From NCBI GenBank assembly GCA_964187785.1, contig OZ076409.1:12710001-12774000 (forward strand): a DNA stretch of 64,000 bases, given 5' to 3'. The notes beneath the pieces were generated by a model. That model did no database searches. It was not told the DNA's origin and was given only the letters and a program-made list of their open reading frames with translations. Shown here piece by piece: positions 8,493 through 33,756 of the stretch. A program made the position numbers and the translations under genes. This DNA is from Amphiscolops sp. MND2022 (lineage: Eukaryota). Numbering within the stretch: position 1 is the stretch's first letter; every line of letters starts with the position of its first letter.

Positions 8493-8619
8493 CCGAGTGT
8501 AAAATTTCTTGGATTTCTCACCAAGATCTTGGATTTTCCTACAAAATCCTGCTACCTTTTAAATTTCTTGATAAGATCTTAGAAAGTCTTACTTCTTCCA
8601 AAAAATCTTGAATTTCTTC

Positions 8620-9249: not shown

Positions 9250-9410
9250 TTTGTCAAACCGATGGGGGTATGAATATTATCGTACCCCTGCTTCTGCCCC
9301 CGATGCAAAAATCCCGAGTTAGTGTTCCCAGGAGTCTATATCCTTGCTCCCTGTGACGATTGCAGACTCCTGGGGCCAGTAAAGTCGGGCATCGGGTGTG
9401 CAGAAGCCTT
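9250..9410 (-). repeat. Dispersed repeat, diverged copy at 33325-33460 (+)
   Basis: Reverse complement GCACACCCGATG...CAGGGAGCAAGGATATAGACTC...TTTTTGCATC matches 33327 onward. Confidence 0.6.
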
Positions 9411-10045
9411 AAATAAAGACATGTTCACCAAAGGTACGAGATACGAGTTTTCGGCCAAAATTTGACTTTTTTCACATTCTCTTCCAAATTTTCACAACGT
9501 CTATGCAATGATGTCCTCTCCCCACATATATGATGAAATCTGCTGCAGTCAGCACGTTCATTGTAACGCTTCAAACAGTTACAGGATTAGTGTTAACGAG
9601 GTTTTTTCGTCTTACATCACGACATTTTGTCATAGAGATCTTTTTTACTCAACGCCTTATTCAAATTCAAATTGTTTTTGTTGGTGAAAATTTGAGCCTG
9701 CAAGTTGTTCAGGATAGGCTTTCATCAAGCGGGCTTTTGCGCCATTGGAAGTCTCTTTTGGTCATAAATTTGTTTATTTATATACTGTATTTGTAATAAG
9801 AATGACCAAATGAAATAAATTATCATTATTATATTATTTTTCTTGACAAGAATCTTGCGAAGATTCTTTATTAAGAAATCCGGGAGGTGAAAATTTCGAT
9901 TAGTTCAAAATTTAGTGCGATTTCATAAATTGTTGAATCAGGCCTGTTTACAGTAATTTTCGGCCATGTTATGGAAAAATTATGGAAAAATCAATAAAAT
10001 TTACCCTTTTGTCAGCAAATTTACGGCCAATTTCGGAGACCAATT

Positions 10046-11088
10046 GTGAGAGAGCAGAATTCAATGATTTTCCAACTTCATCTGCATTTTTTGGATCTTT
10101 CAAGCATCAATTTTAGGACTGAAACATGTCATGTACTTTTTAGATCCTTGATACATACCGATTGGATCTTGTTTTCAATCCTTTTGATTCATTATTTTGC
10201 TCAACTCAGATCTAAAACTGCCACTATGAGAGCAGAATTTAATGATTTTCCTACTTCATCTGCATTTTTTTTGGATCTTTCAGGATCAATTTTAGGTCTG
10301 AAACATGTACTTTTTAGATCCTTGATACATACCGATTGGATCTTGTTCTCAATCCTTTTGGGTCGTTATTTTGCTCAATTCAGATCTGAAACTGGCATTG
10401 AGAGCAAAATTTAATGATACTCCTCCTTCATCTGCATCTTTTTGGATCTTTCATGATCAATTTTAGGTCTGAAACATGTACTTTTTAGATCCTTGATACA
10501 TACCGATTGGATCTTGTTTTCAATCCTTTTGGGTCATTATGTTGCTTAATTCAGATCTTAATTTGCAATTGTGAGTGCAAAACAATGATTTTCCAACTTC
10601 AGCTGCATTTTTAGATCTTTCATGATCAATTTTGGGTCTGAAACATGTATTTTTTAGATCCTTGATACATACCAATTGGATCTTGTTTTCAACTCTTTTA
10701 GATCATTATTTTGCTGAGATCAGATCTGAATTTGCAATTATGAGAGCAGAATACAAAGATTTCCCAACTTCATCTGCATCTTTTTGAATCTTTCATGATC
10801 AATTTTAGGTCTGAAACATACTTTTTAGTTCCTTGATATATAGCAATTGGATCTGATTTTCAATCCTTTTGGGCCATTGTTTCGCTCAATTCAGATCTTA
10901 ATTTGCAATTGTGAGAGCAAAACCCAATGATTTTCCAACTTCAGCTGCATTTTTAGATCATTTTTGGGTCTATAACATGCATTATTTAGATCCTTGATAC
11001 ATACCAAATGGTACTTGTTTTCAATCCTTTTGGGTCTTTGTTTGGCTTAAATCAGATCCTAGTTTGCAATTGTGAGAGCAAAACCCTT
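10046..11088 (+). repeat. ~172-bp tandem satellite, about 6 units
   Basis: GAGAGCA(G/A)AA anchors recur at ~10049, 10228, 10400, 10573, 10742, 10913 and 11074; the unit contains GATCCTTGATACATACCGATTGGATCTTG. Confidence 0.92.
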
Positions 11089-11749
11089 TGTCAATTTATG
11101 CGTATCCCTTCGGGTATTTTTGACGCTGTAAAATTGATGAAATGTCGTCATTTTACCATTGGTTCTCCGTATGATAGTGCTTATTTGGTTTTTTTCAGAA
11201 GTTCGCAACTTTCTTTGCAAGTGTTTGCGAAGCACGGCTTTGCCTCTGTGTATTAATTAGCCTCCACTTACTGAGGTTTTCACATTTATTTTCACGGGAC
11301 CGTTTTTGACACTGCAAGGAGGCTCTGCAGCTTGCAGCGTATTGACACCTTCTCACCTTTTTAACAAGCCCTCTACAACCTGGGCCATGCATACGTAGAC
11401 CACTAACTTTTTGGTTTCGATGCGCACGGACCTTATTGTAGAATAAAAACAAGAGCTGGTTCTCACTGTGGTCCACTTTTTGTACAATCTCCGCCAATAT
11501 TAGCGGCAATATGAAAGAATAAACGGTTTACCTTAATGGCCGGGCTAGCATTAAGGACGCTTTTCGGCACCGCGTTTCCTGAACCCGCTAGATAGGTTAA
11601 GAATTTTTGGAAATTGGGATTTCAAGTTTTTGTTTGTCTCGTAGTCTAGATGGTTCTTAATTTCTATTGACGTTTCTTGTGAGAAGTGATTTCGGGACAT
11701 TCGATTCAACCTTGATTGTTTTCAGATTTATCCGCGTTAGCCAGCCCTT

Positions 11750-13521: not shown

Positions 13522-15009
13522 ATGTTTCAGATTCCTTCTTCTGCTATGGAAAATATTTTCAAAAAAGGAAGACGAGTGCCTGGGATTTCTCTGCCTTTCT
13601 CCCGGTCGGAGAAAAGTACTAAATTTCTTTTCTTTCAAGAAGACAGTACTTACGAAGTGATAAATTTGAATAGTACAATGTGGCCGAAGGATTTCACTGT
13701 GGAGAGGAAACTGTCTCTTTGCCGCGGAGATATTGTGGATCTTTGCTGGGAAGGCCGGAATTACAGTGGCCTGATTGTTGAAAAAAGTGACGACCTGCCG
13801 AGCCTGGAAGCGAAAATGCGGGAGTTGAAGAAGAAAATCAGCTCTCGCCGCTCAGAAAATCAATGCGCTCCAGATTCCCAGATGCAATCAGTTCTTAATG
13901 TCAGTATGGCCTCAGCTGTCGAAACAGGACTTCCTGGTGTTTCACTAACAATCGGTAATCAACAGGAGGCATCTTATTGCACGCCTGATATGAAGAGGAG
14001 GAGAGAGAGCGACTCTGATGCCAGCGATGAAGAGGAAATTGCGTGTTCCGTTGCTGGTGAACTTTTGTTGGTTGTTTATTCTCTTGCATTTTGACCAGCA
14101 TTTCTTTCTAGTGTCTGGTTCTTCCAACAGCAAGGCGATGAAAAACAAAGCTAGTGATCTTCAATCAGAAACGCTCGAGGTTCTGGAAAGAATTTGCAAA
14201 TCTCTAGATAAAACCAGGAAAGCAGCGCAGACAGCGACTACCTTTTGAGAAGTTCTCGTCAACATTACGTCAAATCAACACACAATTCACCCCACAAACA
14301 GGGTTGGCGACATGGATATTCCATCCGAAACGGAGTCCTTTTAACAAAGCGCTGGTTCCTACGCAAGATCAAACTTTCAAGCGATCTTTTAATCAACGTT
14401 GGATGGTTTTTCGCATCAATTTTTGAATAAGTCTAGAATGGTTTTCGACTTCAGACGTAAAAAGGGCGAAGGTTGGATAAAGTTTATAAAGTAAAACAAT
14501 TGAAAAACCACAGTTTTGCTTTCGGTGAGAAAGACAGTCAAATGGTAGCATTTTCTAAAAATTTTTCCTGGACCTCAGAATTGTTCTTGGATGACTGAAA
14601 TAAAAATTTAATGCGAGGGATTGGACGTTAATTGACAACCCTTGTCAACAAGCCCTATCACTCCTGGATCGAGTAGCAGTAACACGCCGATCAGTTCTGT
14701 CAGATCTGTGATGTACAACGGGAAAACCTTCTGTTACTAACTGGCGGCCAGGTCGGTAAGTTTGCGGTGAATGTCGCTCGGACGTTGTTTTCGGACGACG
14801 ATCTGATGTACCAGCTGTTATCACCACAGAAGGACGTGAGCATGCGGGCAAAAATGGACCCTGAGAAGGTCCGTCTCATCAAAGATTGCATAGCCGAAAG
14901 GTTCCCTGATGAGTGACATGGAGCTCGAGAAGCTGTCAGTCAACACGACCGGGATATTAAAAGCGGCAAAGTAAAACGACAACCTCTCTCTGATGTGAGA
15001 AACAAATGA
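13522..15009 (+). pseudogene. Transposon ORF2 copy 1: Tudor/SH3-like N-terminus, coiled coil and C-terminal BEN domain
   Basis: ORF 13522-14056 (GDIVDLCWEGRNYSGLIVEKSDD), a 55-nt GT-AG intron (14057-14111), in-frame exon to TGA 14248. BEN core ENLLLLTGGQVGKFAVNVARTLFSDDDL...KMDPEKVRLIKDCIAERFP at ~14720-15009 with a frameshift and an in-frame TGA. Confidence 0.7.
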
Positions 15010-15017
15010 GGAGACCT

Positions 15018-15410
15018 GTTCATCAACCCTTGATATCTTTGAAAAACTTATTCCAAATAACTCTTCGAAAGTGTTGATCTTCCAAGTCTTTGCTCATATA
15101 TATCAACTTTCCTGTGAAAACAAAGCTTGATGCATAATTCTTAGGGTTTGATTAAGTTCAGGTATTTCTCTTTCAGGATGTTTTTGCTTCTTTGAAAAGG
15201 CAGTTCCTTCTATCTAAAGCTCAAATAAAAATGCCCTAGAAAGGCCATTTGAAACATGAAACCAGAGTCGATGCTTTTGAGGTTTAGTTACTTTGGAGCT
15301 GGTACTTTGGTTGAATGTTTCAAGTTTGCATTTCATCACGCTGTCGCTACTGCAGATGGGTTTTTGCGAAGATTCTGTCAAAATATTCGTTTCTGATTTT
15401 TCCACTGTGT
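15018..15410 (+). repeat. Shared ~400-bp spacer A (copies ~15018, 17241, 18951, 20661, 25509; diverged partial copies 12520-13195)
   Basis: TTCATGAACCCTTGATATCTTTGAAAAACTTATTCC...CATCACGCTGTCGCTACTGCAGAT...CACTGTGTGAAAAT precedes every module. Confidence 0.92.
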
Positions 15411-15727
15411 GAAAATAACTTGAAAGTGTTTGAAATATCGGCTAGAGTTAAAGGTAACCGCTAATTTCTTTGAACTTCAAGTAAAAAGGACACATGACAC
15501 CCAATGGAAATGGAGCTTACATTGCAGCTAATACTTTGGTTTGAGTTTTCAATTTTTTGAAGTACATAGTTCTGACGTGGTACTAAATCTTAGCGCATTA
15601 CTCTAGACTCGAGTCATTTTTTCCATTAGACCTCATGTGTCCTTTTCAGCAAAACATTGGTGCATACCAGTTTTATTTGCCTCCTTTCAACTAGAAAAAG
15701 ATTTGCGCGAATGATAATTGATAGTGG

Positions 15728-16201
15728 ATGTTTCAGATTCCTTCTTCTGCTATGGAAAATATTTTCAAAAAAGGAAGACGAGTGCCTGGGATTTCTCTGC
15801 ATCTCTCCCAGTCGGAGAAAAGTACTAAATTTCTTATCTTCTTTCAAGGAGACAGAACTTACGAAGTGATAAATTTGAATAGTACAATGTGGCCGAAGGA
15901 TTTCACTGTGGAGAGGAAACTGTCTCTCTGCCGCGGAGATATTGTGGATCTTTGCTGGGAAGGCCGGAATTTCAGTGGCCTGATTGTTGAAAAAAGTGAC
16001 GACCTGCCGAGCCTGGAAGCGAAAATGCGGGAGTTGAAGAAGAAAATCAGCTCTCGCCGCTCAGAACATCAATGCGCTCCAGATTCCCAGATGCAATCAG
16101 TTCTTAATGTCAGTATGGCCTCAGCTGTCGAAACTGGACTTCCTGGTGTTTCACCAACAATCGGTGATCAACAGGAGGCATCTTATTGCACGCCTGATAT
16201 G

Positions 16202-16246
<45 letters not shown>

Positions 16247-17232
16247 CTCTGATGCCAGCGATGAAGAGGAAATTGCGTGTTCCGTTGCTGGTGAATTTTT
16301 GTTGGTTGTCACTGTTTATTCTCTTGCATTTTGACCAGCATTTCTTTCTAGTGTCTGGTTCTTCCAACAGCAAGGCAATGAAAAACAAGGCTAGAGATCT
16401 TCAATCAGAAACGCTCGAGGTTCTGAAAAGAATTTGCAAATCTCTAGATAAAACCAGGAAAGCAGCGCCGACAGCGACTACCTTTTGAGAAGTTCTCGTC
16501 AACATTACGTCAAGTCAACACACAATTCACCCCACAAACAGGGTTGGCGACAGAATATTCCATCCGAAACGAAGTCCTTTTAACAAAGCGCTGATCAAAC
16601 TTTCAAGCGATCTTTTAATCAACTTTGGATGGTTTTTCGCATCAATTTTTGAATAAGTCTAGAATGATTTTCGACTTCAGACGTAAAAAGGGCGAAGGTT
16701 GGATAAAGTTTATAAAGTAAAACAATTGAAAAACCACAGTTTTGCTTTCGGTGAGAAAGAGTCAAATGGTAGCATTTTTTAAAAATATCTCCTGGACCTC
16801 AGAATTGTTCTTGGATGACTGAAAAAAAATTTAATGCGAGGGATTGGACGTTAACTGACAACCCTTGTCAACAAGCCCTATCACTCCTGGATCGATTAGC
16901 AGTAGCACGCCGATCAGTTCTGTCAGATCTGTGATGTAACACGGGAAAACCTTCTGTTACTTACTGGCGGCCAGGTCAGTAAGTTTGCGGTGAATGTCGC
17001 TCGGACGTTGTTTTCGGACGACGATCTGATGCACCAGCTGTTATCACCACAAAAGGACGTGAGCATGCGGGCAAAAATGGACCATGAGAAGGTCCGTCTC
17101 ATCAAAGATTGCATAGCCGAAAGGTTTCCTGATGAGTGACATGGAGCTCGAGAAGCTGTCAGCCAACACGACCGGGATATTAAAAGCGGCAAAGTAAAAC
17201 GACAACCTCTCTCTGATGTGAGAAACAAATGA
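15728..17232 (+). pseudogene. Transposon ORF2 copy 2 (Tudor-like/BEN)
   Basis: Tandem duplicate of 13522-15009 at ~2.22-kb period; (GA)18 expansion at 16207-16242 shifts the frame; same TGA in BEN. Confidence 0.7.
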
Positions 17233-18037
17233 GGAGACCTGTTCATGAACCCTTGATATCTTTGAAAAACTTATTCCAAATAACTGTTCGAAAGTGTTGA
17301 TCTTCCAAGTCTTTGCTCATATATATCAACTTTCCTGTGAAAACAAAGCTTGATGCATAATTCTTAGGGTTTGATTAAGTTCAGGTATTTCTCTTTCAGG
17401 ATGTTTTTGCTTCTTTGAAAAGGCAGTTTCTTCTATCTAAAGCTCAAATAAAAATGCCCTAGAAAAGCTATTTGAAACATGAAACCAGAGTCGATGCTTT
17501 TGAGGTTTAGTTACTTTGGAGCTGGTACTTTGGTTGAATGTTTCAAGTTTGCATTTCATCACGCTGTCGCTACTGCAGATGGGTTTTTGCGAAGAATCTG
17601 TCAAAATATTCGTTTCTGATTTGAATATTCATTCTTCCACTGTGTGAAAATAACTTGAAAGTGTTTGAAAAATCACCCCCATGCGCGGTTAGAGTTAAAC
17701 GTAAACGCTAATTTCTTTGAACTTTTAGTGAAAATGACACAAGACACCCAAGGGAAAAAATTGCTCGAGTGTAGAGTAATGGGCTATGATTTAGTACTTT
17801 TTTGAGAACTACGTACTTCAAACAAGTGGAAGCTTTTGAGGTTTCATTGCTTTAGAGCTGATCTTTTGGTAGGAGTTCCTTGCTACTAAAACCCTTCGAA
17901 ATGTCTTTGTCTTTAACTAAAAGCATTCTAACTGTTACGGTCGGTTTTGTGGATGAGTTTTGGGAGTGTTTCTAACAGACTTTTAGCTTCAGTTGGATCC
18001 ACGGAAATGAATTTCACTTGGCAACAATTAGCAGATT

Positions 18038-18942
18038 TTGACTCGAAAATCACAGCGTCCTTGCTTGATAGACTCTTGTCGCAGTCACAAAGTTACTCCT
18101 GTTCCTGATCCTCGGATATTAAACAAAAAACTCTATACTTCTATGAAATGCTGTTATTCTTCGGCTATGGAAAAAGTATCTTTTCAACCATTGGAGCAGA
18201 GCTTGGTTCGAGATTCAAATTACACTAGCTTCGGCGTGTTTGCGAAAGTAGTCCTCGATAATAATAGTGTTATTGCCGGTCTTGTCCGTTGCCTTGCTCC
18301 AATATCAGAGAGCGAGATCATCGACGGAGTGAATGATTTCTCAATTTTCCGAAGCAACACGAGAAGGAAAGGGAGCAAAATGATGCTTGGTCCTGGTTCT
18401 TTCATCAAATTCTGCTGCAAGCACAATTGCATCTATGACTTCGATAGAAAGACGAATCAACTGCGCATAAAGGTATTCAAGAAAGGTGGTATACAACCTG
18501 GGGAAGAAGTTACTGTCAAGTATGCCGATGATTACTTCGGAGAAAAATCAATTTTTTGTTGTTGTCCTTTTACCGAGTATTATGGGAAAATAGCTCCTGG
18601 ATCGATTAGCAGTAGCACGCCGATCAGTTCTGTCAGATCTGTGATGTAACACGGGAAAACCTTCTGTTACTTACTGGCGGCCAGGTCAGTAAGTTTGCGG
18701 TGAATGTCGCTCGGACGTTGTTTTCGGACGACGATCTGATGCACCAGCTGTTATCACCACAAAAGGACGTGAGCATGCGGGCAAAAATGGACCCTGAGAA
18801 GGTCCGTCTCATCAAAGATTGCATAGCCGAAAGGTTCCCTGATGAGTCACATGGAGCTCGAGAAGCTGTCAGTCAACACGACCGGGATATTAAAAGCGGC
18901 AAAGTAAAACGACAACCTCTCTCTGATGTGAGAAACAAATGA
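18038..18942 (+). pseudogene. Chimeric module 3: Suv4-20-like SET ORF (18038-18649) joined to a BEN segment (to 18942)
   Basis: 203-aa ORF with IAGLVRCLAPISESE, NDFSIFRS, LGPGSFI, IQPGEEVTVKYADDYFG and CCCP. Junction CTC at 18594-18596; BEN core 18700-18942 is open (TCA instead of TGA). Confidence 0.8.
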
Positions 18943-19709
18943 GGAGACCTGTTCATGAACCCTTGATATCTTTGAAAAACTTATTCCAAATAACTCTTCG
19001 AAAGTGTTGATCTTCCAAGTCTTTGCTCATATATATCAACTTTCCTGTGAAAACAAAGCTTGATGCATAATTCTTAGGGTTTGATTAAGTTCAGGTATTT
19101 CTCTTTCAGGATGTTTTTGCTTCTTTGAAAAGGCAGTTTCTTCTATCTAAAGCTCAAATAAAAATGCCCTAGAAAGGCTATTTGAAACATGAAACCAGAG
19201 TCGATGCTTTTGAGGTTTAGTTACTTTGGAGCTGGTACTTTGGTTGAATGTTTCAAGTTTGCATTTCATCACGCTGTCGCTACTGCAGATGGGTTTTTGC
19301 GAAGAATCTGTCAAAATATTCGTTTCTGATTTGAATATTCATTCTTCCACTGTGTGAAAATAACTTGAAAGTGTTTGAAAAATCACCCCCATGCGCGGTT
19401 AGAGTTAAACGTAAACGCTAATTTCTTTGAACTTTTAGTGAAAATGACACAAGACACCCAAGGGAAAAAATTGCTCGAGTGTAGAGTAATGGGCTATGAT
19501 TTAGTACTTTTTTGAGAACTACGTACTTCGAACAAGTGGAAGCTTTTGAGGTTTCATTGCTTTAGAGCTGATCTTTTGGTAGGAGTTCCTTGCTACTAAA
19601 ACCCTTCGAAATGTCTTTGTCTTTAACTAAAAGCATTCTAACTGTTACGGTCTGTTTTGTGGATGAGTTTTGGGAGTGTTTCTAACAGACTTTTAGCTTC
19701 AGTTGGATC

Positions 19710-20652
19710 CATGGAAATGAATTTCACTTGGCAACAATTAGCAGATTTTGACTCGAAAATCACAGCGTCCTTGCTTGATAGACTCTTGTCGCAGTCACAA
19801 AGTTACTCCTGTTCCTGATCGTCGGATATTAAACAAAAAACTCTATACTCCTATGAAATGCTGTTATTCTTCGGCTATGGAAAAAGTATCTTTTCAACCA
19901 TTGGAGCAGAGCTTGGTTCGAGATTCAAATTACACTAGCTTCGGCGTGTTTGCGAAAGTAGTCCTCGATAATAATAATAGTGTTATTGCCGGTCTTGTCC
20001 GTTGCCTTGCTCCAATATCAGAGAGCGAGATCATCGACGGAGTGAATGATTTCTCAATTTTCCGAAGCAACACGAGAAGGAAAGGGAGCAAAATGATGCT
20101 TGGTCCTGGTTCTTTCATCAAATTCTGCTGCAAGCACAATTGCATCTATGACTTCGATAGAAAGACGAATCAACTGCGCATAAATGTATTCAAGAAAGGT
20201 GGTATACAACCTGGGGAAGAAGTTACTGTCAAGTATGCCGATGATTACTTCGGAGAAAAATCAATTTTTTGTTGTCCTTTTACCGAGTATCATGGGAAAA
20301 TAGCTCCTGGATCGATTAGCAGTAGCACGCCGATCAGTTCTGTCAGATCTGTGATGTAACACGGGAAAACCTTCTGTTACTTACTGGCGGCCAGGTCAGT
20401 AAGTTTGCGGTGATCGTCGCTCGGACGTTGTTTTCGGACGACGATCTGATGCACCAGCTGTTATCACCACAAAAGGACGTGAGCATGCGGGCAAAAATGG
20501 ACCCTGAGAAGGTCCGTCTCATCAAAGATTGCATAGCCGAAAGGTTCCCTGATGAGTCACATGGAGCTCGAGAAGCTGTCAGTCAACACGACCGGGATAT
20601 TAAAAGCGGAAAAGTAAAACGACAACTTCTCTCTGATGTGAGAAACAAATGA
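19710..20652 (+). pseudogene. Chimeric module 4: Suv4-20-like SET ORF (19748-20359) joined to a BEN segment (to 20652)
   Basis: Near-identical to module 3 at 1710-bp period; junction CTC at 20304-20306. Confidence 0.8.
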
Positions 20653-21409
20653 GGAAACCTGTTCATGAACCCTTGATATCTTTGAAAAACTTATTCCAAA
20701 TAACTCTTCGAAAGTGTTGATCTTCCAAGTCTTTGCTCATATATATCAACTTTCCTGTGAAAACAAAGCTTGATACATAATTCTTAGGGTTTGATTAAGT
20801 TCAGGTATTTCTCTTTCAGGATGTTTTTGCTTCTTTGAAAAGGCAGTTTCTTCTCTCTAAAGTTAAAAAAATGTCAGAAAGGCTATTTGAAACATGAAAC
20901 CAGAGTCGATGCTTTTGAGGTTTAGTTATTTTGGAGATGGTACTTTTGTTGAATGTTTCAAGTTTGCATTTCATCACGCTGTCGCTACTGCAGATCGGTT
21001 TCTGCGAAGAATCTGTCAAAATATTCGTTTCGGATTTGAATATTCATTCTTCCAATGTGTGAAAATAACTTGAAAGTGTTTGAAATATCACCCCCATGCG
21101 CGGTTAGAGTTAAACGTAACCGCTAATTTCTTTGAACTTTTAGTGAAAATGACACAAGACACCCAAGGGAAAAAATTGCTCGAGTGTAGAGTAATGGGCT
21201 ATGATTTAGTACTTTTTTGAGAACTACGTACTTCAAACAAGTGGAAGCTTTTGAGGTTTCATTGCTTTAGAGCTGATCTTTTGGTAGGAGTTCCTTGCTA
21301 CTAAAACCCTTCGAAACGTCTTTGACTAAAAGCATTCTAACTGTTACGGTCTGTTTTGTGGATGAGTTTTGGGAGTGTTTCTAACAGACTTTTAGCTTCA
21401 GTTGGATCC

Positions 21410-24392
21410 ATGGAAATGAATTTCACTTGGCAACAATTAGCAGATTTTGACTCGAAAATCACAGCGTCCTTGCTTGATAGACTCTTGTCGCAGTCACAAA
21501 GTTACTCCTGTTCCTAATCCTCGGAAATTAAACAAAAAACTACACTTCTATGAAATGCTGTTATTCTTCGGCTATGGAAAAAGTATCTTTTCAACCATTG
21601 GAGCAGAGCTTGGTTCGAGATTCAAATTACACTAGCTTCGGCGTGTTTGCGAAAGTAGTCCTCGATAGTAATAGTGTTATTGCCGGTCTTGTCCGTTGCC
21701 TTGCTCCAATATCAGAGAGCGAGATCATCGACGGAGTGAATGATTTCTCGATTTTCCGAAGCAACACGAGAAGGAAAGGGAGCAAAATGATGCTTGGTCC
21801 TGGTTCTTTCATCAATTCCTGCAGCAAGCACAATTGCATCTATGACTTCGATAGAAAGACGAATCAACTGCGCATAAAGGTATTCAAGAAAGGTGGTATA
21901 CAACCAGGGGAAGAAGTTACTGTCAAGTATGCCGATGATTACTTCGGAGAAAAATCAATTTTTTGTTGTTGTCCTTTTACCGAGTATCATGAGAAAAGAG
22001 CTCGGATGTTGCAAAACTGGACGCTATCCCGTTCCAGCTCACGAAATTGCGTCGAAGTTTCAGCCCAGATCGATGAAGCAGTGACTGAGGATGTCAATTT
22101 TGAGACGGTGAATAACAGTTCGCTACCTTTCACTTCGCCGAATAGTAAGCGGTGTCGCGTAAGGGGAAAAACTGATGGTTACGCTTCCCGTCGCTACCTC
22201 AGAAAAATTCCTAAAAAGTCATATCGTCGACGTCGTTCGTCTTCCGCAACAATGTTCTTCCGTCAACTCCAGCTCAAGTCCCGATGGAGGCGCTGTGGTG
22301 CCTACTAGTATTGCCGAAGTGTCATCTGTTGAGTGCCAACCGATAACATCCACACCAGTACATGAAGCCAATTTTCCAGACTTCGTCGATTTCTACGACC
22401 AATTACAGACCTCTGTGTACTTTGATCAATCGGAAACTTCCAGCATTGACACGGCTCCATCTAGTACGTCAGATGACGAGCTTTTTCCGGGATCGAGAAC
22501 AACTGTCAAAATTTGAGGATGGTTTGTCGCTTGTTGCATCTAAAGGTGCTATGAGCGACGCAACGGTGAAGTTAGTTTCGAACCTATTCGAAGCGTCTGT
22601 TACGTTTGTGAACAATGTCCCACCATTTTCAAGTTTCATGAGCCGCGAGAAAATATTTCACGAAAATAATGTGGATTTACTTGTGAGTAATGGTAAAACG
22701 ATCTTTCTGGATTTAGAACCTCAAATTCGACATCTGCTTACTTCAAACGAAGATTTATTTCTCACCGATAGGTTTTGGAGTCCTCAAGAGTTTTCATTCG
22801 CACCTCGTTCAGTGTACCAGGAGACAGTAATTCAATTTATAATGAACACAGATGGGATTTCGCCAATAAAGTCTTCAAATTTTTTGTGTATCCTCTGTGG
22901 TTGATGATGGCCAATCTACCTGAGAGACGCAGATGCTCCTACAGCTATCTCATTTTGGCTCCTTCTTTTGGTGGTGAAGGGAAATGATTATTCGCGGTGT
23001 TCAGTTGAAGGTTGTTGTGGAAGTTGCCTTCGGAGTTTGTGACATGGTAGCTAAAATTTCATTGCTGAATCAAACTCAATTTAACGGACGTTATGGTTGT
23101 CCCAATTGTTTGTCAAAAGGTAGAACTTCCAGCAGTAAAAAGGTTTGGATTTATCCCAGCGATGAAGATGACTGCTTAAGAATTCGAGCGTCGAGGGTCA
23201 CCGACCTGGACACGGATCCCACTCAAGCTGCTCCGGTTTTCGGCATCAAAGGTAAAGTTTTCTCAAATTGATCAAAACACGAGTGAATTTCTCCGAGTGG
23301 TAATTTAACCTTTTACACAGGTCACACCATTCTTGAAAAGTTATTCGACGACTTACCGAATGGCGTATTGATTGATTATATTTTACTGGATCCCATGAGT
23401 GACGAAGCAATTGAAGTCGCGGGGATTCTAATCAGACATTTTCCTACCGATATGAGCCAACTCTAAGGAGAACATAGGCAGGCAGAGTTTCCCGAACTAA
23501 ATTTTGACCTGATCTAGTACGATGAAATTTGAGAAAAGTTTCCAACAATTGAATCAAATTTCTTTTGGTGTGCAATTATTCCATTCTTTCATTGATGTTT
23601 CGTCTTTCACAGCATTTTTGAAAATTAAGCTCGACAATAGGATTTTGTAAGATTTTCGGGAACCTCTGTTGCAAGGTCTATAACTTCCTTTCACGTTCCC
23701 ATCTTCGCGATCAAATGCGCCATTGCGGGTCACTTTCTTCGTTATCGGCCATGCCTTTTGAGTCAGCTAATTATCATCTTATACGGTGTTTCGAAAAGTA
23801 CTTCCAAGCAAATCTCGCTGTGATAAGGTTTCTTCGACAATTTCATCAGAAAAGGAAAACAGCAATCAATTTCAAAGAACACAAGGTTTCGACACTGAAA
23901 ATCCGAAATCCAAAAATGATTGCTGTCGATCCGTCATGTCCACCGAACTTTTGTTCAATAACTGGAGAAGAGTTATGTACCACCAAAACTTCCTTCCGAG
24001 GGAGAGGCTTAACAATCTACTGTCACAACGAGAAATGTGGATTTCCAAGAACAGGCAGTTGCTATCACTTACTGAGTTTTAACCAAGATGGTTACTTGAG
24101 AACTGACATGGCTTTGAATCTTAACGTTCTCCTCTCTACAGGAGAATCATATGTCGCAGTGATGGAGTTTCCAGTCCGACGTACACTTCCAACTTGCCTC
24201 TCTCTGAAACCTGCCGCTGTGGATATTGACATTGACGACAAAATACGATCGTGTTAGGACTTTGGTAGCTTCCATTATTATCTGAAACCAAGATCTGAGA
24301 GTGTCACATTCATTCTAGTTGATGATATCTTCGCAAAGTGCGCAACATTGTCATCTCCTGGAAAACAAAATTGTTTTGAAATTTGCTATTAA
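21410..24392 (+). mobile_element. Suv4-20-like SET domain fused to a CACTA/EnSpm (Transposase_21-like) DDE transposase, copy 1, frameshifted
   Basis: SET core in ORF 21550-22308. Then ELFPGSRTT...SKGAMSDATVKLVSNLF, MNTDGISPIKSS..YPLWLMMANLP, CDMVAKISLLNQTQFNGRYGCPNC, GIKG|HTILEKLFDD..IDY and GSLSSLSAMPFESANYHL, all characteristic CACTA motifs with D, D, E in NTDG, CDM and FES. 69-nt intron at 23252-23320. Confidence 0.85.
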
Positions 24393-24806
24393 TTCGAGAT
24401 TGAGTATTTTACTACAGAGTCTTTTCCCATAAATTTAACCCACGCTCGCATAGCGGCAGATGAGGGCAATAGGTGTAACCCGAAGGCACCCTTACTGTGG
24501 GAAATCTACGTATTCTTTTTTTTAAAGACTAAAACTTTTCGGAAACAACGTGTCAATGTCGAAAAAACTGAAATGGGGACCCTTGGGGATTATATCCATT
24601 CTGTTGCAAAATATCAAAATATGAAGGATGGCCCTTTGGAGACTTTAAAAAAGTCCACAAGGGGGTTGTGCTTTTAGTATCACTCGTTGAATAAAGATTT
24701 TTCGACAATCCTAAAACGCCTTATAGTACTGAAAACCTGACAAAGAAGTTCTACATTGGACGCGAGTTGTAATATTTTGGGGAAAATCGATAGTTATACG
24801 AGAAAT

Positions 24807-24942
24807 GAACGTTATATCGCAACTTTGAAAACGTTACATTAGAACTTTGAAACGTTATATTCGAACTTTGAACCCGTTACAAAAGAACTTTGAAACCGTC
24901 ATATACGAACTTTAAAAACGTCACATCCGAATTTCAAAAAGT
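24807..24942. repeat. ~21-22-bp degenerate tandem repeat (second copy 29648-29783)
   Basis: GAACTTTGAAACGTTA(C/T)A... repeated about 6 times. Confidence 0.8.
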
Positions 24943-26254
24943 TTATATCCCGGTTAAACTCTCGGCTGAGGTTGAACAAAAAGTGGAACATTCAGAATGA
25001 AGTGAAAAAATACCCATTGTAAGAGTAGGGCACTTTTCTTTGGAGAAACGCTGACTAAAAATGGATCCCTCCGATGATTTTAACAAATACTTTGGCCGTT
25101 CTAACAATTGGTTTCCGTTCACCAATTGGTTTTAGTCCTTTTGAATAGATGAAAGTTTGGTCTATTCCTGCGTTTGTCATACATCTTTTGTCCCCATATC
25201 AGTTCATTTTCTTTTGTGATGAATGCGTCGAAACTGGACTCTGATTAGGTATTCGTAGGTCACCGATTTGATGTTATTCGTTCAATTTGAAGTTGAGTTG
25301 TTAGTTTCGTTTCAGCTTTTGATTGTTTTCCAGTATTCGTTTTTTCTCTGGTTTCCTATCGTGTTCGTGATCTCTCCCTGTCAGCGTTGGTTTTTGGACC
25401 TTTTGAACCTTTTTGCTTTATGATCTTCAACATTCTGGGACCCGTTGGAGGCCACGTTCCCGTCGTGTTCCTGTCATATGGACCATTATGAACCTGTCAT
25501 TATGACCTATTCATGAACCCTTGATATCTTTGAAAAACTTATTCAAATAACTCTTCGAAAGTGTTGATCTTCCAAGTCTTTGCTCATATATATCAACTTT
25601 CCTGTGAAAACAAAGCTTGATGCATAATTCTTAGGGTTTGATTAAGTTCAGGTATTTCTCTTTCAGGATGTTTTTGCTTCTTTGAAAAGGCAGTTTCTTC
25701 TATCTAAAGTTTAAAAAAATGCCCTGAAAGGCTATTTGAAACATGGAACCAGAGTCGATGCTTTTGAGGTTTAGTCACTTTGGAGCTGGTAATTTTGTTG
25801 AATGTTTCAAGTTCGCATTTCATCACGCTGTCGCTACTGCAGATCGGTTTCTGCGAAGAATGTCAAAATATTCGTTTCTGATTTGAATATTCATTCTTCC
25901 ACTGTGTGAAAATAACTTAAAAGTGTTTGAAATATCACCCCCATGCGCGGCTAGAGTTAAACGTAACCGCTAATTTCTTTGAATCTTTTAGTGAAAATGA
26001 CACAAGACACCCAAGGGAAAATTGCTAGAGTGTAGAGTAATGGGCTATGATTTAGTACTTTTTTGAGAACTACGTACTTCAAACAAGTGGAAACTTTTGA
26101 GGTTTCATTGCTTTAGAGCTGATCTTTTGGTAGGAGTTCCTTGCTACTAAAACCCTTCGAAATGTCTTTGACTAAAAGCATTCTAACTGTTACGGTCTGT
26201 TTTGTGGATGAGTTTTGGAGTGTTTCTAACAGACTTTTAGCTTCAGTTGGATCC

Positions 26255-29235
26255 ATGGAAATGAATTTCACTTGGCAACAATTAGCAGATTTTGACTCGA
26301 AAATCACAGCGTCCTTGCTTGATAGACTCTTGTCGCAGTCACAAAGTTACTCCTGTTCCTAATCCTCGGAAATTAAACAAAAAACTCTACACTTCTATGA
26401 AATGCTGTTATTCTTCGGCTATGGAAAAAGTATCTTTTCAACCATTGGAGCAGAGCTTGGTTCGAGATTCAAATTACACTAGGTTCGGCGTGTTTGCGAA
26501 AGTAGTCCTCGATAATAATAGTGTTATGCCGGTCTTGTCCGTTGCCTTGCTCCAATATCAGAGAGCGAGATCATCGACGGAGTGAATGATTCTCGATTTT
26601 CCGAGCAACACGAGAAGGAAAGGGAGCAAAATGATGCTTGGTCCTGGTTCTTTCATCAATTCCTGCTGCAAGCACAATTGCATCCATGACTTCGATAGAA
26701 AGACGAATCAACTGCGCATAAAGTATTCAAGAAAGGTGGTATACAACCTGGGGAAGAAGTTACTGTCAAGTATGCCGATGATTACTTCGGAGAAAAATCA
26801 ATTTTTTGTTGTTGTCCTTTTACCGAGTATCCTGAGAAAAGAGCTCGGATGTTGCAAAACTGGACGCTATCCCGTTCCAGCTCACGAAATTGCGTCGAAG
26901 TCTCAGCCCAGATCGATGAAGCAGTGACTGAGGATGTCAAGTTTGAGACGGTGAATAACAGTTCGCTACCTTTCACTTCGCCCGAATAGTAAGCGGTGTC
27001 GCGTAAGGGGAAAACTGATGGTTACGCTTCCCGTCGCTACCTCAGAAAAATTCCTAAAAAAGTCATATCGTCGACGTCGTTCGTCTTCCGCAACAATGTT
27101 CTTCCGTCAACTCCAGCTCAAGTCCCGATGGAGGCGCTGTGGTGCCTACTAGTATTGCCGAAGTGTCATCTGTTGAGTGCCAACCGATAACACCCACACC
27201 AGTACATGAAGCCAATTTTCCAGACTTCGTCGATTTCTGCAACCAATTACAGACCTCTGTGTACTTTGATCAATCAGAAACTTCCAGCATTGACACGGCT
27301 CCATCTAGTACGTCAGATGGCGAGCTTTTTCCGGGATCGAGAACAACTGTCAAAATTTGAGGATGGTTTGTCGCTTGTTGCATCTAAAGGCGCTATGAGC
27401 GACGCAACGGTGAAGTTAGTTTCGAACCTATTCGAAGCGTCTGTTACGTTTGTGAACAATGTCCAACCGTTTTCAAGTTCATGAGCCGCGAGAAGATATT
27501 TCACGAAAATAATGTGGATTTACTTGTGAGTAATGGTAAAACGATCTTTCTGGATTTAGAACCTCAAATTCGACATCTGCTTACTTCAAACGAAGATTTA
27601 TTTCTCACCGATAGGTTTTGGAGTCCTCAAGAGTTTTCATTCGCACCTGTCGTTCAGTGTACCAGGAGACAGTAATTCAATTTATAATGAACACAGATGG
27701 GATTTCGCCAATAAAGTCTTCAAATTTTTTGTGTATCCTCTGTGGTTGATGATGGCCAATCTACCTGAGAGACGCAGATGCTCCTACAGCTATCTCATTT
27801 TGGCTCCTTCTTTTGGTGGTGAAGGGAAATGATTATTCGCGGTGTTCAGTTGAAGGTGTTGTGGAAGTTGCCTTCGTAGTTTGTGACATGGTAGCTAAAA
27901 TTTCATTGCTGAATCAAACTCAATTTAACGGACGTTATGGTTGTCCCAATTGTTTGTCAAAAGGTAGAACTTCCAGCAGCAAAAAGGTTTGGATTTATCC
28001 CAGCGATGAAGATGACTGCTTAAGAATTCGAGCGTCGAGGGTCACCGACCTGGACACGGGATCCCACTCAAGCTGCTCCGGTTTTCGGCATCAAAGGTAA
28101 AGTTTTCTCAAATTGATCAAAACACGAGTGAATTTCTCCGAGTGGTAATTTAACCTTTACACAGGTCACACCATTCTTGAAAAGTTATTCGACGACTTAC
28201 CGAATGGCGTATTGATTGATTATATTTTACTGGATCCCATGAGTGACGAAGCAATTGAAGTCGCGGGGATTCTAATAAGACATTTTCCTACCGATATGAG
28301 CCAACTCTAAGGAGAACATAGGCAGGCAGAGTTTCCCGAACTAAATTTTGACCTGATCTAGTACGATGAAAATTTGAGAAAAGTTTCCAACAATTGAATC
28401 AAATTTCTTTTGGTGTGCAATTATTCCATTCTTTCATTGATGTTTCGTCTTTCACAGCATTTTTGAAAATTAAGCTCGACAATAGGATTTTGTAAGATTT
28501 TCGGGAACCTCTGTTGCAAGGTCTATAACTTCCTTTCACGTTCCCATCTTCGCGATCAAATGCGCCATTGCGGGTCACTTTCTTCGTTATCGGCCATGCC
28601 TTTTGAGTCAGCTAATTATCATCTTATACGGTGTTTTCGAAAAGTACTTCCAAGCAAATCTCGCTGTGATAAGGTTTCTTCGACAATTTCATCAGAAAAG
28701 GAAAACAGCAATCAATTTCAAAGAACACAAGGTTTCGACACTGAAAATCCGAAATCCAAAAATGATTGCTGTCGATCCGTCATGTCCACCGAACTTTTGT
28801 TCAATAACTGGAGAAGAGTTATGTACCACCAAAACTTCCTTCCGAGGGAGAGGCTTAACAATCTACTGTCACAACGAGAAATGTGGATTTCCAAGAACAG
28901 GCGTTGCTATCACTTACTGAGTTTTAACCAAGATGGTTACTTGAGGAACTGACATGGCTTTGAATCTTAACGTTCTCCTCTACAGGAGAATCATATGTCG
29001 CAGTGATGGAGTTTCCAGTCCGACGTACACTTCCAACTTGCCTCTCTCTGAAACCTGCCGCTGTGGATATTGACATTGACGACAAAATACGATCGTGTTA
29101 GGACTTTGGTAGCTTCCATTATTATCTGAAACCAAGATCTGAGAGTGTCACATTCATTCTAGCTTGATGATTCTTCGCAAAGTGCGCAACATTGTCATCT
29201 CCTGGAAACAAAATTGTTTTGAAATTTGCTATTAA
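26255..29235 (+). mobile_element. SET-CACTA transposase copy 2 (more 1-bp indels)
   Basis: Duplicate of 21410-24392 at ~4.85-kb period; same motifs (FINSCCKHNC, NTDG, CDMVAK, PFESAN) and same intron. Confidence 0.8.
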
Positions 29236-29937
29236 TTCGAGATTGAGTATTTTACTACAGAGTCTTTTCCTTAAATTTAACCCGCGCTCGCATAGCGGCA
29301 GATGAGGGCAATAGGTGTAACCCGAAGGCACCCTTACTGTGGAAATCTACGTATTCTTTTTTTAAAGACTAAAACTTTTCGGAAACAACGTGTCAATGTC
29401 GAAAAACTGAAATGGGGACCCTTGGGGATTATATCCATTCTGTTGCAAAATATCAAAATATGAAGGATGGCCCTTTGGAGACTTTAAAAAGTCTACAAAG
29501 GGGGTTGTGCTTGTAGTATCACTCGTTTGAATAAAGATTTTTCGACAATCCTAAAACGCACTTATAGTACTGAAAACCTGACAAAGAAGTTCTACATTGG
29601 ACGCAGAGTTGTAATATTTTGGGGAAATCGATAGTTATTCGAGAAATGAACGTTATATCGCAACTTTGAAAAACGTTACATTAGAACTTTGAAACTTTAT
29701 TTCGAACTTTGAACCCGTTACAAAAGAACTTTGAAACCGTCATATACGAACTTTAAAAAACGTCACATCCGAATTTCAAAAAAGTTTATATCCCGGTTAA
29801 ACTCTCGGCTGAGGTTGAACAAAAAGTGGAACATTCAGAATGAAGTGAAAATATACCCATTGTAAGAGTAGGGCACTTTTCTTTGGAGAAACGCTGACTA
29901 AAAATGGATCCCTCCGATGATTTTAACAAATACTTTG

Positions 29938-30137
29938 NNNNNNNNNNNNNNNNNNNNNNNNNNNNNNNNNNNNNNNNNNNNNNNNNNNNNNNNNNNNNNN
30001 NNNNNNNNNNNNNNNNNNNNNNNNNNNNNNNNNNNNNNNNNNNNNNNNNNNNNNNNNNNNNNNNNNNNNNNNNNNNNNNNNNNNNNNNNNNNNNNNNNNN
30101 NNNNNNNNNNNNNNNNNNNNNNNNNNNNNNNNNNNNN
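29938..30137. other. Assembly gap (200 N)
   Basis: Run of N. Confidence 1.
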
Positions 30138-30436
30138 AAATCCGACATCATTCTGCTTTTATGTCATATCAATGGTTCTTTTGGTTTTATTTGGTTTTAG
30201 TGTTTTTGAATAGATGAAATTTTGGTCTGTTCCTGCTTTTGTCATACATCTTTCGTCCCCAGATCAGTTCGTTTTTTTGTGGTCAATGCGTGAAAACTGG
30301 ACTCTGATTAGGGATTCATGGATCATCGATTTCATGTTATTCGTTCAATCTGAAACTGTGCTGTTCTTTCGTTCATTTCAGCTTTTGATTGTTTTCCCGT
30401 GTTTTTTTCTCGTTTCGCTCTCTGGTTTCGTATCAT

Positions 30437-30860
30437 TTCATGATATATCTTAGGTCTGAAGCGTACCTTTTATATCCTTGATACATGCCAATTATTGGAT
30501 CTTGTTTTCGATCCTTTTAGATCATTATTTTGCTCAAAATCAGATCTGAATTTGCAATTATGAGCGCAGAATTCAATGATTTCATCTGCATCAATTTTGG
30601 GTTTGAAACATGTATTTTTAGATCCTTGATATATACCAATTATTGTATCTTGTATTCAATCCATTTAGATCATTATTTTGCTTAATTCAGATCTTAATTT
30701 GCAATTATGAGGGCAGAATTCAATGATTTCCCAACTTCATCTGCATCTTTTTGGATCTTTCATGATCAATTTTGGGTCTGAAACATGTGTTTTTTAGATC
30801 CTTGATACATACCAATTGGATATTGTTTTCAATCTTTTTGGGTCATTATTTTAGCTCATT
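30437..30860 (+). repeat. ~172-bp satellite, ~2.5 units (same family and orientation as 10046-11088)
   Basis: GATCCTTGATACATACCAATTGG, CAGATCTGAATTTGCAATTATGAG and CCAACTTCATCTGCATC recur. Confidence 0.88.
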
Positions 30861-31035
30861 TGCCGAGACTTCTGAAGGTTTTATGATGACTGGTTCTAAA
30901 CGGGAATCTTGAATCCTCTTGCCTTTTCTTGCCTATTCTTGGTTTCTCTTGAATCTCTTGATAAGAATCTTGGGATTTCTTGAATTTCTTGGCACGATCT
31001 TGCAAAATCTTGGATTTCTTGGTAAGAGTCTTGGG

Positions 31036-31275
31036 ATACCTTTGATCAAATTAAATAAAAACAAAGGGGGACCGTTTAGTCTCGTTTACTTTTGCAAACT
31101 GGAATTTGAACCCACGTACCTTTGCTTTACACCCACGCATTCATCCACTATGCCAACTTTTTTGGCGATGTGTTTTTGCAACCGCCAAAGTATCACCCTT
31201 TGCCTATACGCTAACTTGGCTTCGGTTTAAAACAGATGAGGTCCAGAAAACTTGGGAAAAATAACTTAGTCAGTG
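31036..31275 (-). mobile_element. Family H3 remaining half, with tRNA-like boxes (31095-31160, minus)
   Basis: AAAGGGGGACCGTTTAGTCTCG body motif; A box TGGCATAGTGG and B box GGTTCAAATTCC on minus; ends GTACTAAAAACG like other H3 ends. Confidence 0.55.
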
Positions 31276-33756
31276 ATTTCGTACTAAAAACGCTTTAATC
31301 GATCTGAAAAAATTCTAAAATTTGGCGGAACCTCTCGACATGGTCCAAATTTCCCCCTTTGACCCTATACCAGCGAGATTCCATTTGGAAGAAAAAATTC
31401 GGAAAATTTTTGAAAGGTCGCACGAAAAAGCGTTTATACCGGAAGTGATTAAAATAACTAACCCGAATATTGCTTCAAAAAATTTGAAATTTTTCCGACG
31501 TTCTTAATACAGAAAACACCTGGAACTGTTCTAGTGGTGATATTCATTAAACTAAAAAGGGCTGACTACAAAAAGTAGTATTGAGAACTTGCTGTCATGA
31601 ATCATGGCGCTTTTTCTAGCCATGACACTTGAGCAAATTTTGCATCGTATTTTTCGCGTGTATGATCAAAGAATAATATTCCAAGCGCTGTGAATCAACA
31701 ATTTTATTTTTTCGTTCCAATATCAATAAGACGAGATGTTAGCAACAACTCTCGAGAAATTGTGAACCACTTCAATCCAGGTGTCTCTGCATCAGTAGTT
31801 TTATTCGATTTTTTAGTCTAGTCAGAAGCCAATTAGTGTAAAACCAAATACACAGCTTTCTGGAGCTCAATAATAGAGTGAGCCGATAGAGACAATGTCT
31901 GAGATATATTGATGCAAAATGCCAAAATCAATTTCTTACCACAGATGCTAACAATAATAAAGTGAAATACTTGATTAAGAAAAATTGCAATGAGAGCTAT
32001 GCACAAAAACCCGTGGAGCTACAAGGAGTAAGCTGCTGATTTCGACTCCTCCTTTTCCGCTTCTGCGTCAACAAAATGGAAGGGTCTCTTTAAAGGGACG
32101 ACAGTACAACGAAATAATTGTCATCGCAGAAGAAAACAGAATTTACAGCAGCCCACACCGCATTTGTCATGACGTAGCTAGTATTTCACTAGCTTCAATC
32201 AACCGAATTCAGCCCGTTCCGACCGACACACCGTGGCCTGCAAGGGACTAGGAAGTTAAAATCGCTGGTACGATTAGGCGGCCAAGTAGCAAACAAGACT
32301 CTATGCTTTGAGGCAAAGAACTCGCTTTTCCATTTCCTATAGCCGAGTAGTGCGTGAAGCAAACACAGGAAGTGAAGTTGACAGGTTTTATTAAGTAAAT
32401 TTGAATGGATGACGGGCCAGCCCATTTGAAAAATTGAAATAGCGAACATGAAATTGAAAATTTTCTATTGGAAGACGCAATCAACGTAAAACAGAATTCG
32501 TAAAATACCCCAGTGAGAAAAACTTCGAATCGCTGTGAGCTTTTTGCGTAGAAATTTCATTAATTCTCTCCAGTCTCATTCTTAGAGCATTTTGTTCGTT
32601 AGAAGCAATTATATAGAAGTATGCAAAGCAGTTGGTAAGTGAAAAGCCATGAATGGTTAAATTTGCAAAGAAAAACGAGGACAAGAAACATCTTGATCTG
32701 CAGATGGAACTTTGTAAGTTTGAAAATTGGTCAATGTATCTACTTTTTGGGACTTGGTCCCTAGTAAGCGAGTTTTTCGAAGGGAAAATCATAGCTACAC
32801 CCAATTCACAAAACTAACTGTCGCTCACCCAAGTTTCAGTATTGAGAGCTATATGTAACACTAACTGTGAATGAGAGTTCCAAAGGTCCCCTTTAACAGT
32901 TCGGTTGAATTTTCAAAAATTGAGGCCTGGACCTCAAAATCTAAGAGCCGACCGAAAAATGTCTAAATAACAATCCTGAAAAATCATTCGTTTTTCCTAA
33001 AGTTTTCTTAAGTTTTTTCGAAACTCAAAACTGGAGACAAAATGATTCTGCACGCAACCGAGGAAAATGTTTGTTGACATTTAATTGCTTGCTTAAAACT
33101 GCTATCCAGAATGTTGTCAGCTCTCAAAACCTTTCACAATGCATTTTTGACTGAAAACAACGAAAGTTTCTCAGGAATTCAAGATCAAAGGCAATGAATG
33201 AGTATCGTTTAAAGCAATTAAACATGCTTTGTAACTAGCTTATTTCAGGTAAAATCCGCGGCTGGGCAATCATGCCTGATAGCTTCGAGAAAAAAAAACA
33301 AAGTTGAAATATTCTCTAATATGGGATTATGCACACCCGATGACCAAATTTACAGGCCTTAAGTCTTCGATCTCGCAGGGAGCAAAGATATAAACTCATC
33401 AGAACACAATGGATTTTTTGCATCAGGTGGTAGAAGCGATTGTAGGTTTGATCAAGGTTTGACAGATCGAAATATATTTTCCATAATTGCTATTTAAAAG
33501 TTGAAATCATTGGATATATTTATCACAAGCTCTTCGATTACGCTTCAAATTTTCGACTTCAAATAGAACTGACACTCCTAGTTTCTGTCAATCGAAATTT
33601 TAAGTTTCTATGCAGAAAAGAAAATGCAGAAATCCATACCTTGTTTCAATTGTTTTTTCAACAAAGCGCCAATATTTGTATATTCGATTCCAAAATTTAA
33701 CAAGGCTTAAGTCTAAAGTCGGCGCTGTACCTAAAGCTCAAAAAGCGCGAAGTTTT

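Follow-up and report, generated by a model that had tools for sequence, protein, structure and literature searches.

The window, 64,000 nucleotides of contig OZ076409.1 from Amphiscolops sp. MND2022, contains at positions 21410-24392 the remains of a gene that encodes on its plus strand a SET region, then a Ser/Thr-rich linker and then the motifs of a transposase. An original prediction had read this segment as a CACTA/EnSpm transposase fused to a SET domain of the Suv4-20/KMT5B type and carried by a transposon. By three-frame translation of 21300-24500 together with a motif scan, we located all of the motifs quoted from the segment, on the + strand and in colinear order (Table 1). The reading frame of this copy, copy 1, terminates near 24392.

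Copy 1 has been disabled by several lesions. Compared with its two sister copies on chromosome 6, which are members of the window's family with 88% DNA identity, it lacks 2 bp at each of 21478, 21539, 22250 and 22503 and 1 bp at 22886. Two longer stretches are also missing, 67 bp at 22983 and 273 bp at 23380, the second of which contained the conserved DYMHQ segment, and there are several more small indels. It still has the D, D, CxxC and E motifs, with 273 bp of the transposase core gone. The frame does change at small indels, as predicted, although most of the changes are 2-bp deletions rather than the single-base shifts first assumed, a 1-bp deletion being present at 22886. Contigs covering copy 1 in four public runs, all from one sample, showed only 2-bp indel differences, at 21539, 22058 and 24395, and these do not restore an open frame, so the frameshifts are not suggested to be assembly slips. 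Copy 1 belongs to the first of two 4845-bp tandem units that are 99.1% identical (21172-26018, and 26018 to an N gap at 29938). Copy 2, in the second unit, has the frameshifts of copy 1 as well as the 67-bp and 273-bp deletions, and these shared disabling lesions indicate that the tandem duplication postdates the death of the gene. Copy 2 (26255-29265) also has approximately 16 private 1-bp indels relative to copy 1, with an N gap (29938-30137) nearby; these may be consensus errors of the assembly instead of true mutations. In the same array are three truncated 1710-bp units that contain the upstream region, nothing of the gene but its SET part, and a fragment of a BEN domain, such as that at 20410-20652. 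The BEN match has an E value of 1.4e-4 and 22.4 bits, slightly below the 23.2-bit cutoff. The SET parts of the first two units lie at 18004-18595 and 19711-20305, as found by tblastn with residues 1-199 of P0203, a protein of the window's family described below. Upstream of these, two 2.2-kb units (13522-17232) contain the upstream accessory open reading frame (ORF). At the 5′ side, a 1.2-kb insertion (8619-9838) cuts the 5′ terminus off the rest of the window element. The window copies are dead relics, and the interest resides in the family to which they belong.

In its active form, the gene encodes SET, linker and transposase in a single protein of approximately 1000-1100 amino acids (aa). 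On chromosome 6, a stop-free ORF of 499 aa (L017:4923-6419:-) extends from the C terminus of the SET region across the linker and reaches the C(2)C motif, and the + strand copy on that chromosome keeps a single frame of approximately 643 codons with two stops only. SET and transposase were colinear at five of five other loci of the window's family, which have 63-88% DNA identity. In a public protein collection, the window's own family is represented by 645-aa ORFs (P0203, P0228 and P0229), and a distant family with a 47% identical SET (L015) has an ATG-started ORF of 653 aa with the same layout; the 645-aa (P0203) and 653-aa (L015) ORFs are first-exon ORFs. Searching the genome with the SET module gave at least 151 matches from 487 candidates in various stages of decay, and six of the SET matches open a frame that is 934-1099 aa long. 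Other samples yielded intact proteins that combine SET with DUF1258/Transposase_21 and are 1035-1108 aa in length (P0007, P0023, P0027, P0096, P0110, P0121 and P0133). When the 499-aa ORF was compared with 1.8 billion representative proteins, it matched many clusters with SET and DUF1258/Transposase_21, 982-1108 aa in length. One of approximately 30 relatives of P0027 is a 672-aa protein of the acoel Convolutriloba macropyga that is annotated as uncharacterized. The single ancestral ORF that had been predicted is borne out by these ORFs and proteins, and the intact fused copies sought in the genome and in public proteins were found; the full protein is longer than the approximately 950 aa initially estimated.

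The ORFs in all copies end at the residues KVFSN and a stop, at a predicted 69-nt intron, and in P0230 the frame runs through. The interruptions fall at conserved sites and have canonical GT...AG ends, with a length of 67 nt in a sister family and 69 nt in the window's family, and removal of these stretches restores colinearity with intron-less relatives. We infer that the 67-nt and 69-nt stretches are introns. In L042 (ERR13770114) and in the runs SRR14219478, SRR14219490 and SRR14219491, contigs of 3.3-3.7 kb barely enclose SET-transposase ORFs of 1034-1038 aa, and the contig ends are almost identical in two of the three SRR14219xxx runs. These contigs look like transcripts, but repeat boundaries could look alike.

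The N-terminal approximately 200 residues are, by profile and by modelled fold, a complete module of the Suv4-20/KMT5B-C/Set9 type. The Pfam SET family (PF00856) matched a 252-aa ORF in the window (21550-22308) with an E value of 6.4e-7 and the intact relatives with E values of 1e-5 to 2e-11. Against solved structures, the same window ORF matched SUV420H2/H1 with an E value of 2e-13, the next family following at 9e-5, and such matches are not attributable to chance. A profile built from 22 transposon SET modules matched SUV420H2/H1 with 3e-30 to 2e-28 and KMT2D, the next, with 2e-9, which makes Suv4-20/KMT5B-C/Set9 the best match by 21 orders of magnitude. When the first 232 residues of a sister-family protein were modelled with AlphaFold (predicted local distance difference test score, 84), helices were placed at residues 6-20, 37-45 and 47-59, and Foldseek aligned residues 1-232 of the model to residues 1-288 of KMT5C over approximately 230 columns, with template-modelling scores of 0.64-0.71. 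The top 16 fold matches among solved structures were all SUV420H1/H2, and the top 25 in Swiss-Prot were all KMT5B, KMT5C, Set9 or Suv4-20, with the N-terminal helices within the alignment. Profile and fold thus agree with the originally predicted Suv4-20/KMT5B type.

The transposase is a DDE (Asp-Asp-Glu) enzyme of the CACTA/Mirage/Chapaev (CMC) superfamily and is better called Mirage-like than strict CACTA/EnSpm. Strict CACTA/EnSpm elements have CACTA...TAGTG termini and a 3-bp target-site duplication (TSD). Here the termini are CCCAGTG...CACTGGG and the TSD is 2 bp in the sister family; the termini, the TSD and the match to DUF1258 favour Mirage-like over CACTA, so that of the predicted CACTA/EnSpm identity the superfamily stands and the strict family does not. 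In most members, DUF1258 is a stronger Pfam match than Transposase_21, with 38.2-51.2 bits (cutoff 33.1) on P0007, P0031, P0121 and P0133. Transposase_21 reached 29.2 bits (cutoff 28.6) on L011:7932-8627 and 26.2-27.9 bits on other pieces of the better-preserved copies, a match only at threshold because one piece alone passes the cutoff. A Pfam search of the window pieces brought none of them to a transposase family; profile searches therefore recover the predicted SET on the window ORF itself and the transposase on its relatives. Twelve full-length proteins that are 21-29% identical share invariant D538, D620, C639/C642, H847/H851 and E871. Two Asp, C(2)C, H(3)H and Glu are hallmarks of the CACTA/Mirage/Chapaev transposase group (PMC12730594), and DUF1258 represents the Mirage group, a close homologue of the CACTA family (PMC3985635).

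We found that SET-transposase elements have been mobile recently in this genome. Four copies of the sister family, which has a 47% identical SET, lie on four chromosomes, share >99% identity across 13-21 kb and stop sharply at the same ends. The ends carry a 20-bp terminal inverted repeat (TIR), CCCAGTGACACGAATCTTGG (CCCAGTG...). Three of these copies have 2-bp TSDs on either side (AT, TT and AG), and the ends of the fourth are damaged. The SET is therefore carried by a transposon, as had been proposed. In the window's family, 5′ termini that read CCCAGT(G/A) occur at four places (window 8493, both chromosome-6 copies and the C1:77.5 Mb copy), and the boundaries outside the window are sharp. 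The sister-family TIR was sought in the window without a match, and a scripted scan for CxAGTG/CACTxG TIR pairs found none in six other loci and the window, pieces that are probably shorter than the elements. Both families have a second ORF with a weak BEN match (E approximately 1e-4), slightly below the Pfam cutoff.

These ends bear on the possibility that the genes are a SETMAR-like family domesticated by the host, the window containing decayed paralogues of cellular chromatin factors. Such a family could account for the tandem segmental layout of the window locus and its lack of a 3′ TIR, and for the short spliceosomal-type introns predicted in the genes. However, introns are common among CMC elements, and a host gene family does not sit well with >99% identical copies at unrelated loci that are bounded by TIRs and 2-bp TSDs, with hundreds of candidates in all stages of decay or with the neutral evolution of young copies described below. 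We consider it very improbable.

Several other features of the element ends and accessory ORFs were observed. In a sister family (L023), a similar accessory ORF occurs as two copies of 409-410 aa, and these lie downstream of the transposase gene, not upstream. On chromosome 6, the two copies of the window's family are arranged tail to tail in a palindrome of approximately 31 kb (G000:C6:60.966-60.997 Mb; L018, L011, L017 and L019), with arms that are 92-97% identical, a central N gap and 5′ termini (CCCAGTG...) at both outer ends; its flanking dinucleotides show no TSD match. Just beyond the element end in two copies (window 31090-31160 and L013 30-110), there is a similar TGGAATT(C/T)GAACCCACG stretch that resembles a reversed tRNA 3′ end, and ARAGORN found no tRNA gene in the window. 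A 46-nt inverted repeat at 9374-9419 and 33313-33358 was considered as a pair of TIRs and rejected, because its similarity extends past the arms and its copy number is high, as expected of two copies of another repeat. This inverted high-copy repeat (approximately 9333-9560 on the + strand and 33220-33400 on the - strand; 255 candidates genome-wide) mimics TIRs, and its first copy sits within the 1.2-kb insertion that splits the 5′ end of the element.

To follow the history of the fusion, we compared substitution rates and built a tree. Between subfamilies of the window's family, the ratio of nonsynonymous to synonymous substitution rates (dN/dS; Nei-Gojobori) was 0.12-0.17 for SET, 0.12-0.25 for the transposase and 0.19-0.33 for the linker, which is looser than both domains; all of these ratios are rough because dS is saturated. 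We excluded pairs that involve copy 2, as well as the SET region of L013, because the codon maps are corrupted there by frameshifts. For the two young chromosome-6 copies, dN/dS was approximately 1.0 both in the SET and in the linker, and 0.6 in the transposase. The transposase core was aligned in 74 rows and 619 columns, and in the maximum-likelihood tree 30 of 30 SET-bearing rows fell within one 34-row clade. One of the four SET-less rows in this clade, P0206, is a truncated call of a SET-bearing protein, and the other three, of 581-724 aa, may also be truncated. The sister groups of the clade are ordinary Mirage-like transposases of approximately 720-900 aa without SET. The simplest reading is one old fusion followed by diversification. 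Together, the tree and the ratios show a fusion that is ancestral to one transposase clade and maintained by purifying selection.

The same data decide against chance juxtaposition or passive capture, in which a host Suv4-20 fragment without function lies beside or within a transposase gene. The window alone might suggest this, as its copy is frameshifted and the joining of SET to transposase there needs assumed corrections. However, uninterrupted ORFs run from SET to transposase in several families and organisms, selection on the SET is as strong as that on the transposase, the transposase tree unites the SET-bearing rows in a single clade, and the colinear layout recurs at no fewer than five independent loci with 63-88% DNA identity. 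On these grounds the fusion is not a chance juxtaposition; this explanation is already refuted, and we leave it almost no probability.

We therefore consider it very likely that window 21410-24392 is the dead main gene of a large cut-and-paste CMC (Mirage-like) transposon, the active form of which is a single Suv4-20-SET–linker–transposase protein, proposed to act on nearby nucleosomes. From N to C terminus, the active protein would consist of a helical N-domain, the SET and a post-SET zinc site, the Ser/Thr-rich linker, and a DNA-binding and DDE part. In the mechanism we propose, the transposase would bind the ends of its own element, which are rich in CTTGG/CCAAGATCTTGG, and, bound there, would carry the SET module onto adjacent nucleosomes. 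The module would then engage the H4 tail and probably methylate histone H4 lysine 20 (H4K20) in cis, and the element would thereby set the chromatin state at its own donor or target site. Possible consequences are control or self-limitation of transposition, an influence on the break-repair pathway after excision, and target choice. The modification or evasion of silencing, suggested in the original prediction, would be a putative role.

Whether the module could act in this way depends on residues that are understood in the host enzymes. In Suv4-20h2, Ser161 (in NDFS) bonds the target-lysine amine and Tyr217 lines the lysine channel (PMC3874154). In the transposon modules, the NDFS serine (S117/S118, at the Ser161 position) is invariant in 22 sequences (NDFSIFRS in the window), and the Tyr217 position (Y174/Y175) is at least 90% conserved in them (VKYADDYF in the window). 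S117, N136, C139, N142, Y174 and C186 are conserved across proteins that are only 21-29% identical. After the SET, the acoel clade has a CxCxxC motif, and the clade of this genome has CxCx5H. The kept cofactor and lysine-channel positions favour a working methyltransferase, as far as sequence can tell.

Several points weigh against this reading as a whole. The Phe191 position (PNCxY), which in Suv4-20 shapes the pocket for the substrate methyl group (PMC3874154), is an invariant Tyr in the SET modules (Y146; HNCIY in the window). The NH(D/S)C motif keeps its Asn and Cys, and its His is replaced by Ser in most members, a few (P0002 and P0024) retaining the canonical NH. With these two changes, catalysis by the module may be weak, altered or lost, and they leave room for an altered specificity or for pure docking on the H4 tail. 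Moreover, the dS underlying the selection estimates exceeds 1.3 in the informative pairs, the support of the SET clade (SH-like approximate likelihood-ratio test (SH-aLRT), 88) is not strong, and searches of the run index for this organism found four DNA-like runs of one sample and no RNA run, so that transcription of the SET-transposase genes is presumed and their introns are predicted. Finally, TIRs and TSDs are established for the sister family and not for the window's own family, in which 5′ termini only were found, no 3′ TIR being recognisable in the window.

The altered residues raise the alternative that the SET is a catalytically dead docking domain, which would tether the transposase to nucleosomes (for example, those with H4K20me1) and steer integration as chromodomains do for chromoviral integrases. 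Consistent with this possibility, the activity of Suv4-20h1 fell dramatically with the same F-to-Y change (PMC3874154), Ser has mostly replaced the His of the NH motif, and the fold is preserved together with the substrate-groove residues FS(I/V). However, conservation is at least 90% at G100, N137, S118, Y175 and the post-SET Cys, which are linked to cofactor binding and catalysis, among proteins with only 21-47% identity, and P0002 and P0024 have the canonical NH. The His is in any case not universally needed in SET-like enzymes. We regard pure docking as rather unlikely. The converse proposal is that in an old animal Mirage-like clade the transposase itself is an active H4K20-type methyltransferase, which would mark its own donor or target chromatin during transposition and would still be active here. 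We hold it tentatively, as a plausible idea that is somewhat more apt to fail than to hold; if it is true, the mobile element has a chromatin writer and a recombinase in the same polypeptide.

To place the SET-transposases among known systems, we compared them with host enzymes and with other transposons. They share with Suv4-20/KMT5B and KMT5C/Set9 the N-terminal helices, the SET fold, the NDFS strand Ser, the Tyr217 position and the post-SET Cys cluster, the acoel clade retaining CxCxxC. Unlike these host proteins, the transposon module is fused to a transposase and lacks their C-terminal heterochromatin-targeting regions, and it has Tyr at the Phe191 position, mostly NS in place of NH and, in this genome's clade, a post-SET CxCx5H. 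With Mirage/CACTA (EnSpm)/Chapaev elements they have in common the matches to DUF1258 and Transposase_21, large size, subterminal repeats, a second ORF, short TIRs and a 2-bp TSD, the range in the CMC group being 2-5 bp (PMC12730594). They differ from known CMC elements in their N-terminal histone-methyltransferase-like module, in starting with CCCAGTG, not CACTA, and in the BEN-like second ORF.

SETMAR (Metnase) is similar in that a single polypeptide has a SET towards its N terminus and a DDE-type transposase towards its C terminus. It is a single primate host gene, formed when an Hsmar1 mariner copy was captured as an exon (PMC6326780), and its SET is reported to methylate H3K36 (PMC2847698). 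In contrast to SETMAR, which has a Tc1/mariner transposase, the genes described here belong to multi-copy, TIR-bounded mobile elements with a Suv4-20-type SET and a CMC transposase, and they are independent of SETMAR, as the original prediction held. SET coding sequences are also known in HarbingerS and MuDR (Phytophthora), in Helitrons and in the red-algal Plavaka PAG2 (PMC12730594; bioRxiv 10.1101/2025.02.11.637652). In Plavaka PAG2, the one system for which those papers describe the structure, and in HarbingerS by their wording, the SET is in a separate gene; the hosts that they name are oomycetes and red algae. Because transposon SET accessory genes are already known, the novelty lies in the in-frame fusion and in the Suv4-20 type. 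A full-text literature search, with Repbase families outside its scope, found no description of a SET-CMC or SET-Mirage fusion, in line with the original remark that this architecture was not known to be described.

Transposons are usually regarded as targets of histone-based silencing, and a few are known to bear accessory genes that modify chromatin or DNA, such as TET/JBP, SET and the VANDAL anti-silencers. The elements described here have a complete Suv4-20-type module inside the transposase polypeptide, selected through deep divergence, and still look mobile. They provide a natural, independent parallel to SETMAR and a natural system in which to ask whether a transposase uses a histone-modifying or histone-binding module for target choice, self-control or break repair, and how such a module would work without the targeting regions of the host enzyme. 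They also account for hundreds of ‘SET-domain genes’ that automatic annotation would class as host chromatin regulators.

Table 1. Positions in the window of the SET-transposase copies, their motifs and associated element parts
Feature	Position	Strand	Basis
Element 5′ terminal sequence CCGAGTGTAAAATTTCTTGG..., with CCAAGATCTTGG motif at 8521-8532	8493-8618	+	92% identical to 5′ terminus of chromosome-6 copy
Subterminal region, ~170-bp tandem repeats	9839-11090	+	colinear with chromosome-6 and C1:77.5 Mb copies
Three tandem 1710-bp truncated units, starts ~17236, 18946, 20657	17236-21354	+	repeat maps
Copy 1, Suv4-20-like module (N-terminal helices, SET, post-SET C-C-C...H)	21410-21990	+	profile, fold, motifs
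MEMNFTWQQLADFD	21410-21451	+	motif scan
SHKV	21492-21503	+	motif scan
IAGLVRCLAP	21679-21708	+	motif scan
NDFSIFRS	21739-21762	+	motif scan
LGPGSFINSCSKHNC	21793-21837	+	motif scan
GEEVTVKYADDYFGEKSIFCCCPFTEYH	21907-21990	+	motif scan
Copy 1, Ser/Thr/Arg-rich linker	21991-22477	+	frameshift at 22250
Copy 1, CMC/Mirage-like DDE transposase remnant	22478-24392	+	D, D, C(2)C, E motifs; alignment
ELFPGS	22478-22495	+	motif scan
NTDG (D1)	22845-22856	+	motif scan
CDMVAK (D2)	23038-23055	+	motif scan
FNGRYGCPNC (C(2)C)	23080-23109	+	motif scan
Predicted 69-nt GT-AG intron (G/GTAAAG ... ACAG/GT)	23252-23320	+	inferred from sequence
PFESAN (E)	23754-23771	+	motif scan
3′ repeat region of unit 1	25136-25490	+	followed by unit 2 upstream region, 25504-26254
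Copy 2 of SET-transposase remnant	26255-29237	+	repeat map, alignment; 4845 bp downstream of copy 1
3′ repeats, ~170-bp repeats, CTTGG-motif-rich stretch; homology stops here	30204-31040	+	comparison with sister copies

Other features of the window were also noted. A stretch on the + strand (53197-53400) starts with CACAGTG, continues with many CCAAGATC / GATCTTGG motifs and looks like the terminus of a CMC-type element of a different family. Two host features lie on the - strand: an intron-less gene for a 532-aa ALG9-like mannosyltransferase at 1263-2861 (Glyco_transf_22, 1.8e-100), and an exon at 37752-38207 that encodes a HAUS6 N-terminal domain (1.1e-13).

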